Source of the DNA: Chlorokybus atmophyticus
Taxonomy: Eukaryota > Plantae > Mesostigma and Chlorokybus algae
Assembly (NCBI GenBank): GCA_009103225.1
Contig: RHPI01001327.1
Location: 124,001 to 188,000 of the forward strand
DNA: 64,000 nucleotides
Reading direction: 5' to 3'
Below, piece by piece: positions 16,046 through 24,849 of this stretch (position 1 is its first letter; each line of letters starts with the position of its first letter). Below the pieces are notes generated by a model that ran no database searches, was not told the DNA's origin, and worked only from the letters and a program-made list of their open reading frames with translations. Made by a program: the position numbers and the translations under genes.

Positions 16046-16829
16046 ACCTGGCTGCTGCGGCGCCGGCGGCGGCGGCGGCGGTGCGAGGGAGCTGGCTGTG
16101 TGAGGGAGCTCTATGCTAGCGGAGTAACGTGAACGTGATACGCCTGTGTGCACCGTACATTGCGCAATGCTATGATATGAATGAAAGCAACTCATGAACG
16201 GCCGCTGGCGCAGGCCTGGTCGTTGCTATGGCCAGGCAATGGCGGTGAGACTATCAGTGTTATCAAACCACTTGGAAGATACTTATAGTTCTCTTCGGTG
16301 TGATAAAACATGGTGTGCTTGTTCGTTGAGTGGTAGGGTTGCACTAGTATTGTGACTAGAGCATTGTTTGTCGGATGTGCGGGACGCAGCTTGACAACCG
16401 CTTAAGCCAGCATGGAGTCGTCCATGAGGCCAGGCAGCAGCACGTATGGCAGCAGCAGCAGGCGGTTCCAGAGCTTCTCGCGGAGCACCACTCGCGGGAT
16501 GTCCTTCTCGCGCAGAAACGCTCTCCTCCTTCAAGGTACAAAGATACAGCATGACAGAAACACACGTGCGTAGATAATGTACAGCGTGATGTGATGATAG
16601 AGCCGTTTGTAAGCGTCTAGGCCTCACGCCTTGGTGTCCGGGAAGGTCAATTGTGCCCACGCATGCACGCGCGTATGGTGTGACAACTTGCTATACATAT
16701 GCATGCATGCATCGTGTGATGCATTGAACATGTAGGTGTAACATAGGTAGACACACATCAGTCCTGTCTATGCTAGACATGTGCATGTGCTGTAACCAGA
16801 GGTGGTACTGATGCCACTGTAACATAAAG

Positions 16830-19800
16830 AACCAACCGCGATGGTAACACAGATTCGGGCACGCCGGAAGAGGATTGTGAGGAGTTGATTGCCACCAAGT
16901 CCACGCACTTTACTGCCGATGAGCTGCAGCGGCTGCTCCATGCATACCGCCGCGCAACAGGCGGCAATCGCCTTCAGGTGAGGAAAAGAGCTATGTTCTC
17001 CAGTAAATCATATACGCGCACCCACCCACAAGCACACGCGCACGCGCACGCGAATGCACGCACGCTCTTGCGCATGTACACACACTAGCAGGTGCGCACA
17101 CTTATGCACAGACTGCACAGAGACGCGCACACACGTATACCTGCGCACGCGCGCGCACATATGTGCCACACAAAGACACACACATAATCATGGGTCTGCT
17201 TTGGCAGATGGGTCAGTTCGTTGAGATGGTGCAAGCGGAGATGGGCTGGACCAACGCGCTCCTGCGGCGACAGCTCTGGAAGGCTTTCGACGTACAGGGT
17301 ACGCACATGCTTTGACGCTGTCCCCCATAATCACAGTGTTGAATGATGCATCGACACGCAAATGCGCGAGCAGGTGTGGGCGAAATCGGCTTCAAAGACT
17401 TCGCCAAGGGTTATTCTACGCTCGTGCGCGGAACCGTGCCAGGTGAGATGGTAACTCACACCCACAAGGACACATGTGAGTGAGTGTGTGTGAGCACGTG
17501 CGCGCACACACGCACGCATGCACACGGGCGTAACCAGCCAAACAACAACAATAAACTGACGAGTGTGACTTCAGAGTTGGTTGCGTTCGCTTGGCGTATG
17601 TACCACCTCTCCGGCGACGACGACCTCCTCCAGCCCGCCAACCTCTACATCATCCTCAAGCTCGCCATGTCCGCTCAACACTCCACCCCCTCCACCTCCA
17701 CCCCCTCCACCACCACCTTCCCCTCCCCCTCTCGCCCCTCCTCCCCAACACTCTTCACCTCCTCGAAGCCATCATCCAAGCAGCCGTCCGCGACGGAGAG
17801 AGCGGCACGCAGCGTCGTGGAGAGTGCGTTGGGGGGGTCGAGAGCGCCGTTGACAAGAAGCGAGTTTAAGAGATTGGTGTTGAGGGAAAGGAGATTTGTG
17901 GACTGTATACTGCCGGCGTTCGAGTGGATACCGCAGGTAGGGTGGGGAGGTGTGTATGCGTGTGTGCATGTCTGTGTGGACTTTCTGGGTTTGACATTGA
18001 ATGGGGAGTATGTGTGCCTGCGCGTCAGAGTTTACAAGTGCGTGCACGTTGCCTGCGCGCGCGTGCGCGTGGGTTTGTATCTGCGTGGTTGTATGTGTAC
18101 TTGCCCCCGTACATGTACACGTGTGTGCCACCAGAGTGTGTAATTTCACACTACTACCACACTACCACACTCACGCTGTAATATGCAGGACCCGGTGCAC
18201 CGTGCTGCTGAGGCGGGTGAGTCCGCCGAAGTCGAGCACCTTATCCTCCGCGAGGGTTTAGACATCGACGGCGCCGACGCGTCCGCCTGGCCGACAACTC
18301 CTTTGCACCTGGCCGCCCAGTACGGACACGCCCACATTGCCGCACTCCTCGTGAGACTGGGAGCGAGAGTGAGACTACTGTCGGCACCCATGCCGGTACC
18401 GATGTCGGCGCTGTCGATCGCGGTGGTGAATGATAGACCGGCCGTCGCGCAGCTACTGCTGGAAGCAGGTAAGAGGGATTGACACGGAGGTGACATCGTG
18501 AGGGTGTGTCGATGCGCATACATACGTAGCCACGTGCACACACCCCACACAAACACTCAGACGAACATCTGCATGCCGTATGTGCGTACGCGCGTCCGTG
18601 CACGCATTTGCACGCGCACGCACGCAAGGTGTCGCTTCTAGTAAGTTCAACGATGTTGTTCCTCCCCAGGTGTTGACCCGCTAGCTCGCGAGGGCCCCTC
18701 CCAGTCGACTCCCCTCCACCTTGCGTGCCACTCTCAAGCGTGTCTCTCTCTGCTTCTGAATGCGATGCCCACGGGCGTGCGGGCCGTGGACGTCCGCGAT
18801 GGCAATGGAGACACGCCCATACACCAGTGCGGGAGGGTGGAGGAGGGGTGGGTGGGATTGGAGATGATGGAAAGGGCGGGGAAGGTGAGGGGGGTGGGGT
18901 GTGGGTGTGTGGTGAGTGGGGGGATGTGACACGTATATGCGTGTGACAGCTTGAGGCGGAGGATGTGGATGTGCCGAATGACAAGGGGCAGGCGCCGATG
19001 CATGTGGCGGCGGAAAACCGAGCATTTCGGGCCGTAAGAAAGGTGGGGTGGGGGGGGTGGGCGGTGGGTGGGGGGGGCGCACGTGTGTGTACATGTGTAG
19101 TTGTGCACGTGCAAGAGCCTACTGCGCGCGCAAGCGTATGTGTGCGTGTGTAACAGACATTGTATTTGTCCAGCTGTTGGATCTTAGAGCAGACCCCAAC
19201 ACCGTCGACTACGGCGGCCGCACCCCACTCCACGTCGCCTGTAGCATCCCCCACAACGACTCCATCGTCGAACTCCTCCTCACCACCCTCACCTCCCCCC
19301 CCTCCTCCGTCCACCTCCGCGACTGCGACGGCCGCACGCCCCTTCTCACCTGCATCCCCACCCACTCCACCAAGGTCCTCCGGCTCCTCATCGATAAGGG
19401 AGCCGACCCGCGTGCGGCCGAGGCGGGCACGGGAACCACGCCGTTGCATGCGGCGGTGAAGGAAGAGTGGGTGGAAGGGGTGGAGGTGTTGCTCAACGTG
19501 GAGCCGAAGGTGGAGGTGGAGGCGGATGGGAGGGGGTATACGGCGTTGGACTATGCGAGACATCCGAAGGTGGGGAGGGGGGGTGTTGAAGTGTTGGGTG
19601 GATGATTGGTGTTGAATTAACGTGTATGTGGGTGGTGCAGATTATTGAGTCGCTACGTGTGCACATAGCCCAGTTGTATCCGACGTGGAGTCCTGCTCAT
19701 CCGGTGGCGTTCATCCTCGGCCTCGTGTTCTACCAGGGGGAGTAAGTGCAAAGGAGACAACGATTGCATCACCCTGTACTGCATGCATCACGCACGCACA

Positions 19801-20726
19801 TGCATGCATGTATGCACGCAAGCAACTTCTTGTTTCTGGTAGGTGGGAAGTGACTGATGAAGGCACGTCCCTTGAGAAGCACGTCCTTCGCAAGCCCAAG
19901 GTCTCTCGCTCTCTGGCCGCCAAACGCGCCGCCAACATGTGCACCACACAAGAAGGCCTGTTGGTAAGCATCAGCAACCCCTTCGGCACAACACACCCAC
20001 ATACCAACATGTGATGTCTTTCCCAGACTCAACTAGAAGAGGCGGGTTTCATCGTCTCCACCGAGTCAGTTCGCATTCGTGCTCCCCTCATGTTGGGTGG
20101 CCGTCTCCGCGAGTACGTCCTCGCTCGCGTGGGCGCGCCTCTGTACCGACTCCAACAAGAAGCCACGCGGGTGCGTTTGCAAGTGAGACGGGCCGACACG
20201 GACAAGTACGACGCGTATTACGTGGCGCATGATAGTGATACGGCCTTTGAGGAGTTCACGCCGGCGGAAAGACATACACTCGCACTGTCGATACTCATGT
20301 CGGTGACAAGAGGGAAGTATGGAAGTGAACAAGCTGTAGCGCCACCGGGATTCCCACCTGAACAAGTAAGCAGCGCTACATCAACATGTAAGCAACAACA
20401 ACAACAACAACAACTACATCAGCAGCAACAACGTTGCTACTATGTATCACACCATCACTACGATTGCTGTGTGTATGATTCAAGTGGTATTGTTGGGATT
20501 GTATCTGACTCTCTTCTCCTTTAGGGTTCTGCGGGTGTGAGGGTTGAGGTGTACCGGCGTTTGGGTGTGATCGAGAAGGCGGTGGCACTGCATCAGCCGG
20601 CAAAGCGAGCTGCCGTGGCGGCGGTGTGGCGGGGAAACCTCGCGCACCACCTGGCAAACCTACAAGTGAGTGTGATGGGGAGAAGTGTTGGTTGCCCCGT
20701 GCGCGCGCGTACGCACGCGCGCGCGC

Positions 20727-20762
<36 letters not shown>

Positions 20763-23700
20763 CCATCCCTGCGCATGCGTGCGTGCGTGTGGGCGTGTCT
20801 CAATGCTATTGTTGCAATCACAGGCCGACCAGTCCAAGGCCTTAGAGGCCGTCCTGCTCTATTTCGGCCACCGTGTCGCCTTCTACTTCGGTTTCTTGTC
20901 CTTCTCCTCCTCCTGGCTCCTCTCACCCTCCATCGCGGGCGCGGTGGCCTTCGGTCTCGAGTTCATCCCGGAACCGTATGCCTCGGTGGTGCGCAAGCGG
21001 TCGACGAACGCCACGGGAAACGACACGAGATATGATCATCCCATGATGATGGTACTGGGGCTGTTTATTGCGGTGTGGGTGGTGATTGCGGCGCAGGCGT
21101 GGGGGAAACAAGAAGGAGCACTTGCAGTGAGGTACGTTAATAACGTCATCATCGACATTATGCTGATGATGATGTTGACATGGTGCGTGCGTGCGTGTGC
21201 GTGTGTGCGTACGTGGTCCGCGTGTACATGAGCGTGTGCATTGGCTTACACATGTGTGTGCGCGATGCCTTGTGTTGGTCAGGTGGGGTGTGGATGACTA
21301 CGTCTGCGAGGATCCAGCCCCGAACCCACGCAGCACGGCGCACTTGAGCTTGTCTTTTATGAACGGGACGTGGACGAACGTGCCGCGTCTTAGCGCCGCC
21401 GATATCCGCCGCCAGCGTCGCAACATGTTGTTGATATCGCTGCCGGTATTCGTTATCCTGCTCCTATGCACTGCAGCCCTGCTTGCCCTGCAGTTATATC
21501 TGCGCCACCTCGCGCGACATTCCCATGCTGTAAAGCAGGCCAACATGGAGTTGGCGGCGATATACGGCATAACGGGGCTGAACGGCGCGCTGATATACCT
21601 CTTGGATCGACTCGCCGGAGACATATTGAGGCACACAGTTGATATCGAGAACCACCCCACCTTGCAAGGGAGAGATATCGCCCTCTGGCCTCGGGCTCTC
21701 CTGCTCTCCGCGGCGATAAACTACCACTCGCTGTTCTATTTCGCGTACTACGTGCGCGATATCGCTCTCGTGGCCCAGCAGCTTGCCGGCATCGTTGTGG
21801 TGTCGGCCGTTTTCCGGGTCATCGATAGATATCTGCTGCCGTATATATCGATTCTGCAAAGGCAACAGAGCGAGAGACAAGATGCCAAACGGAATGAGTT
21901 GAGCAATGGTGAGGGGGACAAGCAGCTGATGGTATTGCCGAGAATCAAGGTATATGTACACTTCTGGTCAACATATGAGTACGGCATGTGTGCGTGCATG
22001 TGTTTGGGTGTACGTGTGCCAGGGTGCGTGCGCGCGCGTGCACGCACACACCTACACACACGTTCTCAAGCTCGCATGCGTGCGTGTGAGGGGTTGTGTG
22101 CTTGTATCGCTTTGTTTGCGCGTTGTGTGTTGTCAGCATGTATACGCAGTTAAGGACTGCTGTCTGTACAACACAACAACAGAGCAACAAGGTGGCGGAC
22201 GTGTCGGCACTGCGCCCAGCATCCCCTTTACGCCTACTGCGTGCCACAAAGACCCCTCCACCATTAGGTACTCACTCTTCGCATGTCCACAACATCATCA
22301 TACTCAACTACCATCATCGCAGACGAGCGTGTTGCCATGGAGGCAGGAGCCGCCTCCAGATCGCCGTCCTTCTCTACCCTGCGTGGAGACGATGGCGATG
22401 GTATCAACCTCATGCGCGAGGAGACGTTCGGTCCATCGCGCGGGGAGGTGCTCGCAAACGAGCCGTGCGTGGCACTTGAGCAGACACACACGTTCATCAT
22501 GTTCGGCTTTGTTGCGCTGTTCGGGGCCGCATTTCCGCTGGCGGCACTCGTACTCTTCGTTCAGTCATACTGCGAGGTGAGCGATGGTAGCGTGACCGGA
22601 CAGTCACGCACGCACGCACACACATACACATGCATACACCCCCCCATGCGTGTGCGCGCGCGGGCGCATGTGCGACACACAGGCACACGTACACATGCAC
22701 GTGCGTGTACACACATGTACACTAATGTCTGTATACGCGCGCACACATTCACAAGCACATCCGCACCCAAACACATTCCATGTCTAGGTTCGTTTGGGTG
22801 CATGGCGTTTCTGCGAGGTGTCCCGTCGTCCCTTTCCCCTCCGTTGTTCCGGTCTCGGTCCCTCCTGGCGTTGGTGTCTGCGCACTCTTGCCGCCGCGGG
22901 AGTCCTCAACCACGCGTTTCTGATCGGGGTCTCTTCCCGCACCGTCGGCGGGACCTTCTTGATCAATATCACGTTGTTGCAGAGAGTTGCGTTGGCGTTT
23001 GGGGTGGCGGCGGTGGTGTTGAGTGGGTTTTGGGTGTATTCGGGATTGAACCGGGTACAGGACCCGCTGTGGGCACGCATGCGAAGAGGGGAGCCGTTAA
23101 GGTGGGGGGCCACATACCCACATATATGTGGACACACATGTATGAACATGACTACTAACAACAACCTGTACCGACGCACTCATTGCAGGTATGTTAGAGA
23201 TGCGTATCGTGTGGGTGTGGCGGTGAGGGAACGAAGATATCGTCTTCTACGCATGGCAACATCAACTTCATCGGCGTCATCAGCACACGATGCGGCTGCT
23301 GTTGCTGAAGGCATCGACTCGCGCGCAGCACACAGATACCAACTTGTGAGTTGACCAGTGACTTGTTGTTGTGGTGGTGTGGGTTGTATGATGTTGTGGT
23401 GGTGTCCACCACAGGTTGTGAGGTACGCGGACTCGTTGCCCGTGGAGGACAAGAGGCGTTTGTTGTACGACGCGACCACGACGGTGCCGGCATTGATCGA
23501 GCAGATATCGCTGCGGGTGCGGTGCGGCCTTTGGGGAGATGTGTCCAACAACAACAACAACAGCACCAACACCAACAGGGAGCATGCCACTGCCGATGCC
23601 ATGCTCGCTGCGCTCGTCCCTGTCACGGACATCCGCGACTGCTATCTACTCGGCAAACGAATACGGGAATGCGTGTGGGAACTGTTTGAACAACGGGGTG

Positions 23701-24849
23701 GAGGAGAAGGCGCCAACAACAACAACAACAACGATGGCAAACTTGACAATGTTGAGAGCACTGTTAGGGAATACGCCTGCATTGAAATGAACTGCACCAT
23801 GCCGCAGGCAAGGAAAGATGTTTGTCACACTCACACATAATGTGTACATTCGTGCGTGCGCGTGTGTGCATGTGTACGTGTGTGCATGTGTACGTGGTTG
23901 CGTGTACATGTGCGTGCATGTGTGCGCGCGCGTGTGTGTAAATAGGTGTGCAAAGCGTACCTCAACATCTTGTGTTGGCAGGCGGAGCGCTACCTCAAGC
24001 TGGTCCGTTACATCGACGACCGCGGCGGCAACCCCTGGCACCACATCCGCCACTTGATGCACACGTACCCTCAAGGTCTCCCCGAGGTGTTGGACCTCCT
24101 CCACCGCGACTTCTCCTCCTCCGACCCGGGCGAGCCCCCGCCGCACCTGCTCGGCCAGGTCGTGGAGCCGATCGGAGCGGCCAAGGCGGCGTATGCGAGG
24201 GCGGATGTCGTGAGGGAGAAGATGACAGAGGCGTGGGAGGGGGATAGGAGAGCGACGCTGGAGGAACTCGTATGGAAGGTAGGAGGGAGGCGTGTGTATG
24301 TGACTATGTGTGTCTACGCGTGTGTTGCTTGGGCACTTGTGCTTGTCACGCAGCAACTGTGACTACGCCAGTAGTGGGTTGGGGTTGCTTGTATGTATGT
24401 GTCTGAGTGCTCACACTCACACGCGCATGCAGGTGAGCGAGGAGATGGGTGTGTGGCCAGCCCAGCTCCATCGCTACTTGTTGATCAAGGTACGTCCACA
24501 CATCACCCATGCTACACCCTATCCCTCACCACTCACGATGCCAACGATCACTGCACACCAAACTGTTCTTTCCTGCCCACCCCCGCAGCGTTACTGCGAC
24601 TCCCTTGACGACCGCAAGCGCAAGGACGTCCTCCTCTTCGCTCGCTCGGGTACGTTGGAGCTCGCCGCCCGCGTGCGCGGCCTGCAAGTTGCGGGGGAGT
24701 GGAAGGACTACGGGGAGCCCGAGTTCGCTGCGCGGTTGCAACTGCCTGTCAACACCGCGTACGAGAGTGTTAGTAATGGGGATGGGATTGGTGATTATGG
24801 TGTGGATAGGTATGCTGCGGCGGAACAGAGCGCGAGGGAACAAACTTGA
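16830..24849 (+). CDS. Fusion: CBL/NCS-like EF-hand domain, ankyrin repeats, anoctamin (TMEM16) domain and an uncharacterised C-terminal region; ~20 exons
   Basis: EF region: STHFTADELQRLL, KAFDVQGVGEIGFKDF, AFAWRMYHL. Ankyrin repeats: TTPLHLAAQYGH, STPLHLAC, APMHVAA, RTPLHVAC, TTPLHAAV. Anoctamin motifs: LYFGHRVAFYF, WG...EDPAP, ENHPT, INYHSLFYFAY, FGFVALFGAAFPLA, RRPF..SGLG..W. Consecutive exons join in frame. The start is unresolved because of an in-frame TAA at 16825-16827. Confidence 0.85.

Follow-up and report, generated by a model that had tools for sequence, protein, structure and literature searches.

A Chlorokybus gene joining an EF-hand module, ankyrin repeats and a TMEM16 membrane domain in one reading frame

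We analysed a window of 64,000 nucleotides (nt) from the genome of Chlorokybus atmophyticus (assembly GCA_009103225.1, contig RHPI01001327.1, positions 124,001 to 188,000 of the forward strand); all coordinates below are positions within this window. It contains a single, expressed, multi-exon gene for a predicted protein of ~1,710-1,750 residues. From its N- to its C-terminus, this protein consists of an EF-hand module of the type found in neuronal calcium sensor (NCS) proteins, KChIP and calaxin, ~10 ankyrin repeats, the cytosolic N-domain and the membrane domain of a TMEM16 protein (anoctamin), and a helical tail of ~340 residues. TMEM16 proteins are studied as calcium-gated chloride channels and lipid scramblases. 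An initial annotation of this DNA had placed EF-hand, ankyrin and anoctamin exons in one frame at 16830-24849, and these limits fit our results, as a candidate acceptor lies at 16830 and the stop codon ends at 24849.

Gene structure and transcript evidence

Our gene model comprises 22 exons on the + strand (16853-24849), with 1,707 codons plus a stop codon (24847-24849) and no internal stop (Table 1). All acceptors are AG and all donors are GT, bar one possible GC donor at 23808. Exons 1-3, the junction 18468|18670 and everything past 22576 were modelled from homology and splice consensus. Homology set the junction 22576|22788 (VRLGAWRF vs. EVRLDIWKF), which restores the motif of transmembrane helix 8 (TM8); the acceptor choice 22576|22818 was rejected, because it deletes ten conserved TM8 residues. 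When full-length relatives were compared with the window by tblastn, their matches kept the same order between 16846 and 24726, spanning the relatives from residue 17-33 to within ~20 residues of the C-terminus. The relatives that align to this whole span are 1,523-1,914 residues long.

Transcript evidence came from the public run X1, which contains 44% of the sampled words of the stretch, approximately the share taken by exons, and was the sole run found in this way. X1 was assumed to be RNA, and its contigs are short, with none spanning the whole gene. In the contigs the introns are missing, with borders that fall exactly on GT..AG, and the contigs therefore derive from spliced RNA. One of them connects the final EF-like exon with the first of the ankyrin exons (17936|18189); within EF exon 4 the RNA covers 17759-17932 and is spliced on to 18185. 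The other introns skipped are those at 18884|18950, 19569|19641, 19741|19843, 19963|20027, 20365|20525, 20665|20824, 21131|21283 and 21949|22183. A contig of 414 nt spans ankyrin exons 6-7-8, while a contig of 698 nt runs from ankyrin exon 8 through the small exons 19641-19741 and 19843-19963 into the anoctamin N-terminal exons 20027-20365 and 20525 onwards. Over the 6,000 bases to which they were aligned, the contigs together extend the chain to 22267, with a loose end resuming at 22323, and the RNA-supported chain from 17575 to 22267 holds 1,004 codons without a stop. No X1 coverage was found at 16300-17499, where exons 1-3 lie. Run X2 yielded no contigs matching the gene, and the contigs of run X3 matched only repeats of 18-30 nt and were uninformative.

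These results bear out the single reading frame of the initial annotation: the 22-exon model is open, and X1 contigs link EF-hand to ankyrin exons and ankyrin to anoctamin exons. The annotation had also named separate EF-hand/ankyrin and anoctamin mRNAs as the result that would speak against it. Instead, an X1 contig joins ankyrin exon 8 to exons 9-12. A pseudogene was rejected as well, in view of the open frame, the spliced RNA and the conserved motifs.

The 5' end of the gene has two candidate starts. The relatives carry 16-30 or more residues ahead of the start of their match to the window, and sequence reading combined with phase arithmetic offers a candidate first coding exon upstream of exon 1, which may begin at ATG 16375 (frame 0) and join acceptor 16830, or begin at ATG 16412 (frame 1) and join acceptor 16853. 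Both options finish at the donor after 16535. This candidate exon had no RNA coverage in X1 and no homology match in the tblastn search with relatives. The N-termini of the orthologues read MWAK, MASP, MASN or MADL and thus lack the MG of a myristoylation signal, and their EF1 lacks the CPxG motif.

Several further details of splicing were observed. At 23808 (+) there may be a GC-AG intron (CAG|GCAAGG), whose junction fits the orthologues best (..MPQ|AERY..); a GT donor 12 nt downstream offers an alternative that adds four residues. Within exon 14, one contig (depth 2, side 28) skips an in-frame segment of 93 nt, through which other sequence reads at depth 6-7. Its removal deletes 31 residues, including a hydrophobic helix, and the segment is kept in relatives; the skip is probably a minor or aberrant splice form. 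The segment 20366-20524 (+) is open in the frame of the upstream exon and would code for poly-Gln, yet an RNA contig shows it spliced out as an intron; it exemplifies introns of this gene that resemble coding sequence. Many of the introns are rich in simple repeats of the CA/TG (ACACAC) type, at 17000-17200, 18490-18640, 19036-19090, 20386-20433, 20697-20800 and 22590-22780.

Table 1. Coding segments of the gene and the evidence on which each is based.
Feature	Position in window	Strand	Basis
Candidate first coding exon (two options)	16375..16535	+	sequence reading and phase arithmetic
EF-hand module, exons 1-4	16853-16977, 17208-17298, 17374-17442, 17575-17936	+	relatives, family profile, fold, RNA in exon 4
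Ankyrin block, exons 5-8	18189-18468, 18670-18884, 18950-19042, 19174-19569	+	Pfam, RNA, relatives
Linker and TMEM16 cytosolic N-region, exons 9-12	19641-19741, 19843-19963, 20027-20365, 20525-20665	+	RNA, relatives
TMEM16 membrane domain, exons 13-17	20824-21131, 21283-21949, 22183-22267, 22323-22576, 22788-23101	+	Pfam, RNA to 22267, homology
Optional 93-nt in-frame GT..AG intron within exon 14	21446..21538	+	one low-depth contig
Helical C-terminal domain, exons 18-22	23189-23345, 23415-23807 (or -23819), 23982-24278, 24433-24489, 24589-24849	+	alignment with eight relatives

Domains of the predicted protein

Pfam gave no EF-hand match at E up to 1 for the small exon pieces of exons 1-4, and the Pfam EF-hand matches of the orthologues were all under the curated cut-off. 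Since Pfam was silent on these exons, the EF domain was recognised only via a family profile and its fold. Exons 1-4 align along the entire N-terminal domain of full-length algal relatives at ~41-59% identity, and their order is that of residues 17-270 of these relatives (tblastn). The domain is strongly conserved among the relatives, for instance in ELGW..LLRKQLF.AFD and GYSTMLRGTVPELL.FAWR. A profile built from six relatives and run against the PDB matched calaxin (E 2.5e-16), KChIP4 (3e-15), NCS-1 (6.6e-11), calcineurin B (1.6e-9), recoverin (3e-7) and CBL4 (4e-7), as well as calsenilin, KChIP1/2 and hippocalcin. An AlphaFold2 model of the EF domain of the Pycnococcus orthologue (pLDDT 78) gave a similar picture. 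Its top Foldseek matches were calaxin, frequenin/NCS-1, neurocalcin, recoverin and KChIP1 over 180-190 residues, with TM-scores of 0.54-0.70 against calaxin, NCS-1 and neurocalcin. Judging from sequence and from the fold predicted for this orthologue, the N-terminus is an NCS-type module of four EF-hands, similar to KChIP and calaxin. The initial annotation had described it as CBL/recoverin-like, which is correct at the level of fold and family group: CBL4 and recoverin are significant matches in the PDB, with calaxin and KChIP the best.

The calcium-binding loops of this module are poorly preserved. EF1, EF3 and EF4 are degenerate in every family member, in that the canonical pattern is absent, while EF2 is near-canonical in most members (e.g., DFDGHGDINFVE, DLDGHGDINFTE and DTNGNGEVTFLE). 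In the window protein the EF2 loop reads DVQGVGEIGFKD and is interrupted by intron 2; its positions 3, 5 and 12 are Q, V and D instead of the expected D/N, D/N/H and E. None of EF1-EF4 of the window protein has a canonical 12-residue loop (D-x-[DNS]-x-[DNSG]-G-x-[ILV]-x-x-x-E). Exon 4 also holds an insert rich in Ser, Pro and Thr, and a low-complexity insert occurs at the same site of the EF module in the Mesostigma copy.

The ankyrin block comprises 328 residues. Pfam Ank, Ank_2, Ank_3, Ank_4 and Ank_5 all matched in its four pieces (18144-18479, 18645-18926, 18947-19150 and 18982-19602), with E-values of 1.2e-10 and 1.3e-18 for Ank_2 (42.2 and 67.8 bits, cut-off 27.3) and scores of 39.3 and 61.3 bits for Ank (cut-off 21.1). 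Identity with relatives is 40-57% across these exons. The earlier count of at least six repeats holds but is an underestimate, as a block of this length corresponds to ~10 repeats. The linker that follows (exons 9-12) has no Pfam match; every one of its junctions comes from RNA contigs, and its exons stand in the same order as in the relatives.

The membrane domain matched Pfam PF04547 in four pieces (20548-21228, 21179-22150, 22268-23155 and 22788-23351), which correspond in order to profile positions 4-76, 74-301, 328-361 and 362-432 of 460. Taken singly, two of the pieces pass the cut-off of 28 bits, with 52.0 and 54.5 bits, whereas the other two narrowly miss it at 23.5 and 27.1 bits. The initial annotation had named a full TMEM16 domain, and the pieces run in order over positions 4-432. 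The orthologues match the same profile at E-values of 1e-46 to 1e-86. Against the PDB, the closest solved relative of the Pycnococcus orthologue is TMEM16K/ANO10, a lipid scramblase of the endoplasmic reticulum (5oc9; E 2.3e-26), followed by TMEM16F, TMEM16A and nhTMEM16 (1e-20 to 1e-24). The TMEM16 membrane domain is shared with TMEM16K, and the motifs of TM6, TM7 and TM8 can be aligned between the Pycnococcus orthologue and TMEM16K/TMEM16F. TMEM16K, TMEM16F, TMEM16A and nhTMEM16 differ from the algal protein in lacking the EF module, the ankyrin repeats and the 340-residue helical tail. A simple hydropathy scan of the model gave only five strong peaks; the TMEM16 standard is ten membrane helices in a dimer.

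The membrane calcium site was assessed at the positions of mTMEM16F N620 and E624 (TM6), E667 and E670 (TM7), and E699 and D703 (TM8). These positions were mapped by HMMER alignment of the Pycnococcus domain to TMEM16F and TMEM16K, and then across 16 family members. The window protein has R,R / E,H / E,G, and thus keeps two of the five acidic ligands and differs from the solved TMEM16 proteins at four of the six positions (R, R, H and G). An aspartate sits one residue ahead of the TM6 glutamate position. The Mesostigma site reads D,L / E,R / E,G, so that glycine at the last TM8 position is common to both streptophyte copies. In contrast, the site is N,E / E,E / E,D in Pycnococcus and its close relatives. 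Approximately 10 of the 16 members lack one or more acidic ligands and ~6 keep all or nearly all of them, and the window and Mesostigma copies have lost more calcium ligands than the other green-algal orthologues. Overall, the canonical calcium ligands are mostly replaced in the window copy, at EF2, the one loop that looks functional in relatives, as well as at TM6-8, whereas both sites are kept in Pycnococcus and its close kin.

The tail behind the membrane domain is conserved over ~340 residues and contains three repeats of the type RYLxxxRYxDxL. Window exons 18-22 tile the tail alignment of the eight relatives exactly. In the orthologue Pycnococcus XRB04755.1 the tail covers residues 1362-1707, and its AlphaFold2 model is all-helical (pLDDT 89, pTM 0.85). 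The tail has no Pfam match, no PDB sequence match and no Foldseek match below E 0.2. The best Z in a wide search with VIA-align was 5.9, to helix-turn-helix modules, a value within the noise for helical proteins, and a shape search of the ESM Atlas gave TM-scores of 0.26 or less. The tail thus has a confidently predicted structure and no recognisable relative.

Relatives among early-branching green algae

When the largest anoctamin exon was searched exhaustively with HMMER against a collection of 15 billion proteins, no more than 18 reached E ≤ 0.001, and the best five belong to the same family. The best match is 35% identical to the window exon, and hence the window's own protein is absent from this collection. 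Mesostigma viride, a pedinophyte, Pycnococcus provasolii and environmental assemblies supplied the top matches, which are 1,658-1,914 residues long and combine weak N-terminal EF-hand matches with numerous ankyrin repeats and an anoctamin domain. When the EF module served as query in a word search, 13 clusters were retrieved, all of 1,523-1,914 residues and all with ankyrin and anoctamin domains, including Cymbomonas (named 'EF-hand domain-containing protein' in UniRef), Pyramimonas and other MMETSP transcriptomes. Some of the relatives are open reading frames from transcriptomes labelled 'type:complete'. With the membrane domain as query, further members came to light, namely Chloropicon primus ('anoctamin') and environmental clusters of 65 and 42 members, and the ESM Atlas contained one matching cluster, with 53 members. 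In the membrane-domain search, the family scored at E-values of 1e-85 or below and ordinary anoctamins at 1e-27; this gap indicates that the family is a discrete TMEM16 clade.

In all, ~20 protein clusters carry the architecture, spread over seven or more green-algal genera and numerous environmental sequences. The orthologues include Pycnococcus provasolii XRB04755.1 ('anoctamin-8'), Cymbomonas CYMTET_16981, Chloropicon primus 'anoctamin', Pedinophyceae sp. YPF-701 CAG9463280.1, Mesostigma viride Mv08385-RA.1 and Pyramimonas MMETSP1169. From end to end, these proteins agree in the order of their domains, in their range of lengths and in the succession of matching segments. Contrary to the initial annotation, the architecture is therefore not a one-off but belongs to a conserved clade. 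Its statement that known animal, fungal and land-plant anoctamins lack such an N-terminus agrees with our searches, in which none of the recovered anoctamins of ordinary length carries the EF module. No land plant, core chlorophyte or non-green organism was found among the matches, in searches limited by length windows and shared words. As far as these searches reach, confinement of the family to early-branching green algae is moderately supported by the sequences. These algae, including the earliest streptophytes, would then hold a TMEM16 type that was not found in land plants or core chlorophytes in these searches. Another Pycnococcus entry, GHP07043.1 ('Anoctamin-8', 1,053 residues), is without the EF and ankyrin part, whereas the newer XRB04755.1 has 1,707 residues. 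GHP07043.1 is an older, truncated annotation, and such models may hide the architecture in other genomes.

The architecture had been called possibly undescribed, with the reservation that it might already be common in algae. Our literature search turned up no description of an algal anoctamin bearing ankyrin repeats or an EF-hand domain, and no paper combining 'anoctamin' with Mesostigma or Chlorokybus. However, the family is already present in databases (NCBI, UniProt and EukProt) under the generic names 'anoctamin', 'Anoctamin-8', 'EF-hand domain-containing protein' and 'ankyrin repeat protein', and its spread over several algal genera means that the reservation applies in part. Hence, the family appears to be undescribed as far as we searched, but not absent from databases.

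Proposed role: a TMEM16 core with built-in auxiliary modules

KChIP is an auxiliary subunit of channels, which clamps a cytosolic helix of the channel. The algal EF module is matched best, in sequence and in fold, by KChIP, the partner of Kv4, and calaxin, the calcium sensor of ciliary dynein. Unlike the algal module, which is fused to its TMEM16 core, they are free-standing proteins. They also have two or three working EF loops, whereas the algal family has at most one usable-looking loop, and the window copy none that is convincing.

By analogy with such systems, the evidence leans towards a TMEM16 scramblase or channel in which a fused EF-hand clamp and an ankyrin tether serve as built-in auxiliary modules, an arrangement resembling the animal complexes of CIB, ankyrin and ANO1 or TMC described below, in which these components are separate proteins. 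The membrane core would be a dimeric lipid scramblase and/or a non-selective channel, like other TMEM16 proteins. The EF module would serve as an auxiliary subunit within the chain and would clamp a cytosolic helix of the core, much as KChIP does on Kv4 and CIB2/CALM-1 on TMC-1 and ANO1, while the ankyrin repeats might bind the assembly to a partner or to the cytoskeleton. In the Chlorokybus copy, these EF and ankyrin contacts might control gating, in place of calcium bound directly at the classical sites. Calcium is probably still involved in relatives whose EF2 loop and membrane site are intact. The green-algal clade, with its EF module and ankyrin array in one chain, offers a simple system to study how such modules act on a TMEM16 core, and members of the family that differ naturally in whether their calcium sites are intact can be compared.

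Several points weigh against this interpretation. The clamp is an analogy, and CIB was not among the 60 best PDB matches of the EF profile; calaxin, KChIP and NCS-1 were closer. Loss of ligands is no proof of calcium independence, because the aspartate near the TM6 position or other sites could bind calcium. Furthermore, because exons 1-3 and the 3' third of the gene are without RNA support, an isoform lacking the N-lobe may exist.

An alternative explanation, put forward in the initial annotation, is that the protein is a calcium-gated channel or scramblase that has gained, besides the membrane site, a second calcium sensor of its own, the cytosolic EF module. Part of this claim stands, as the module does fall within the NCS group of calcium sensors. 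The near-canonical EF2 of most members, such as DFDGHGDINFVE and DTNGNGEVTFLE, and the retention of all or nearly all TM6-8 ligands in ~6 of the 16 members also argue for it. In the window copy, however, a sensor role is doubtful, because its EF loops are degenerate, with three non-canonical positions in DVQGVGEIGFKD on top of the family-wide decay of EF1, EF3 and EF4, and because its membrane site (R,R / E,H / E,G) keeps so few acidic ligands. For the Chlorokybus protein we therefore regard two calcium sensors as unlikely, though worth serious consideration; the model may suit the relatives with intact sites better.

A slightly less likely possibility is suggested by complexes from animals. 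Mechanosensory currents of ANOH-1 in Caenorhabditis elegans and of human ANO1 require CALM-1/CIB2 and UNC-44/ankyrin, ANO1 co-precipitates with CIB2, and CIB proteins are homologous to KChIPs (PMC11830769). TMC-1 likewise works with CALM-1 and ankyrin (PMC7343241). Regulation of TMEM16 proteins by cytosolic partners has become visible only recently, through this report on worm and human ANO1 with a CIB-type EF-hand protein and ankyrin. The CIB2/CALM-1, ankyrin and ANO1/ANOH-1 or TMC-1 complexes have the same three ingredients as the algal chain: ankyrin repeats, a membrane protein of the TMEM16 superfamily and a small protein with four EF-hands from the KChIP/CIB/NCS group (PMC11830769; PMC7343241). 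The algal protein might thus be a single-chain 'Rosetta stone' version of these complexes, gated by force or by a tethered partner instead of by calcium at the membrane site, and that site would on that account be free to decay in much of the family. If true, the partnership of EF-hand clamp, ankyrin tether and TMEM16-superfamily protein would be older than animals. However, the animal complexes consist of three separate proteins and the algal version of one chain, the likeness lies in the co-occurrence of modules, and calaxin and KChIP are closer to the algal EF module than is the CIB of the animal complexes.

Rather improbable, in our view, is that the protein is mainly a structural tether or scaffold similar to ANO8, with little or no transport, in which the ankyrin and C-terminal domains do the work. 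ANO8 has a reported role in tethering the endoplasmic reticulum to the plasma membrane. The degenerate calcium site of many members and the large conserved cytosolic domains (~1,100 of 1,700 residues) would suit such a role, and NCBI automatically named the Pycnococcus protein 'Anoctamin-8'. An automatic name is not evidence of orthology, however; the membrane domain is conserved at full length in all members, as its Pfam E-values indicate, and the closest solved relative, TMEM16K, is a scramblase.

Finally, a gene-model artefact that fused neighbouring EF-hand/ankyrin and anoctamin genes, by read-through or chimeric assembly, might be suspected from contigs that are short, assumed to be RNA and nowhere cover the whole gene, but it is very improbable and the two-gene model was rejected, as the introns are missing exactly at GT..AG borders, a spliced contig bridges ankyrin exon 8 and anoctamin exons 9-12 in an open frame, and the same fusion recurs in ~20 independent clusters from genomes as well as transcriptomes.

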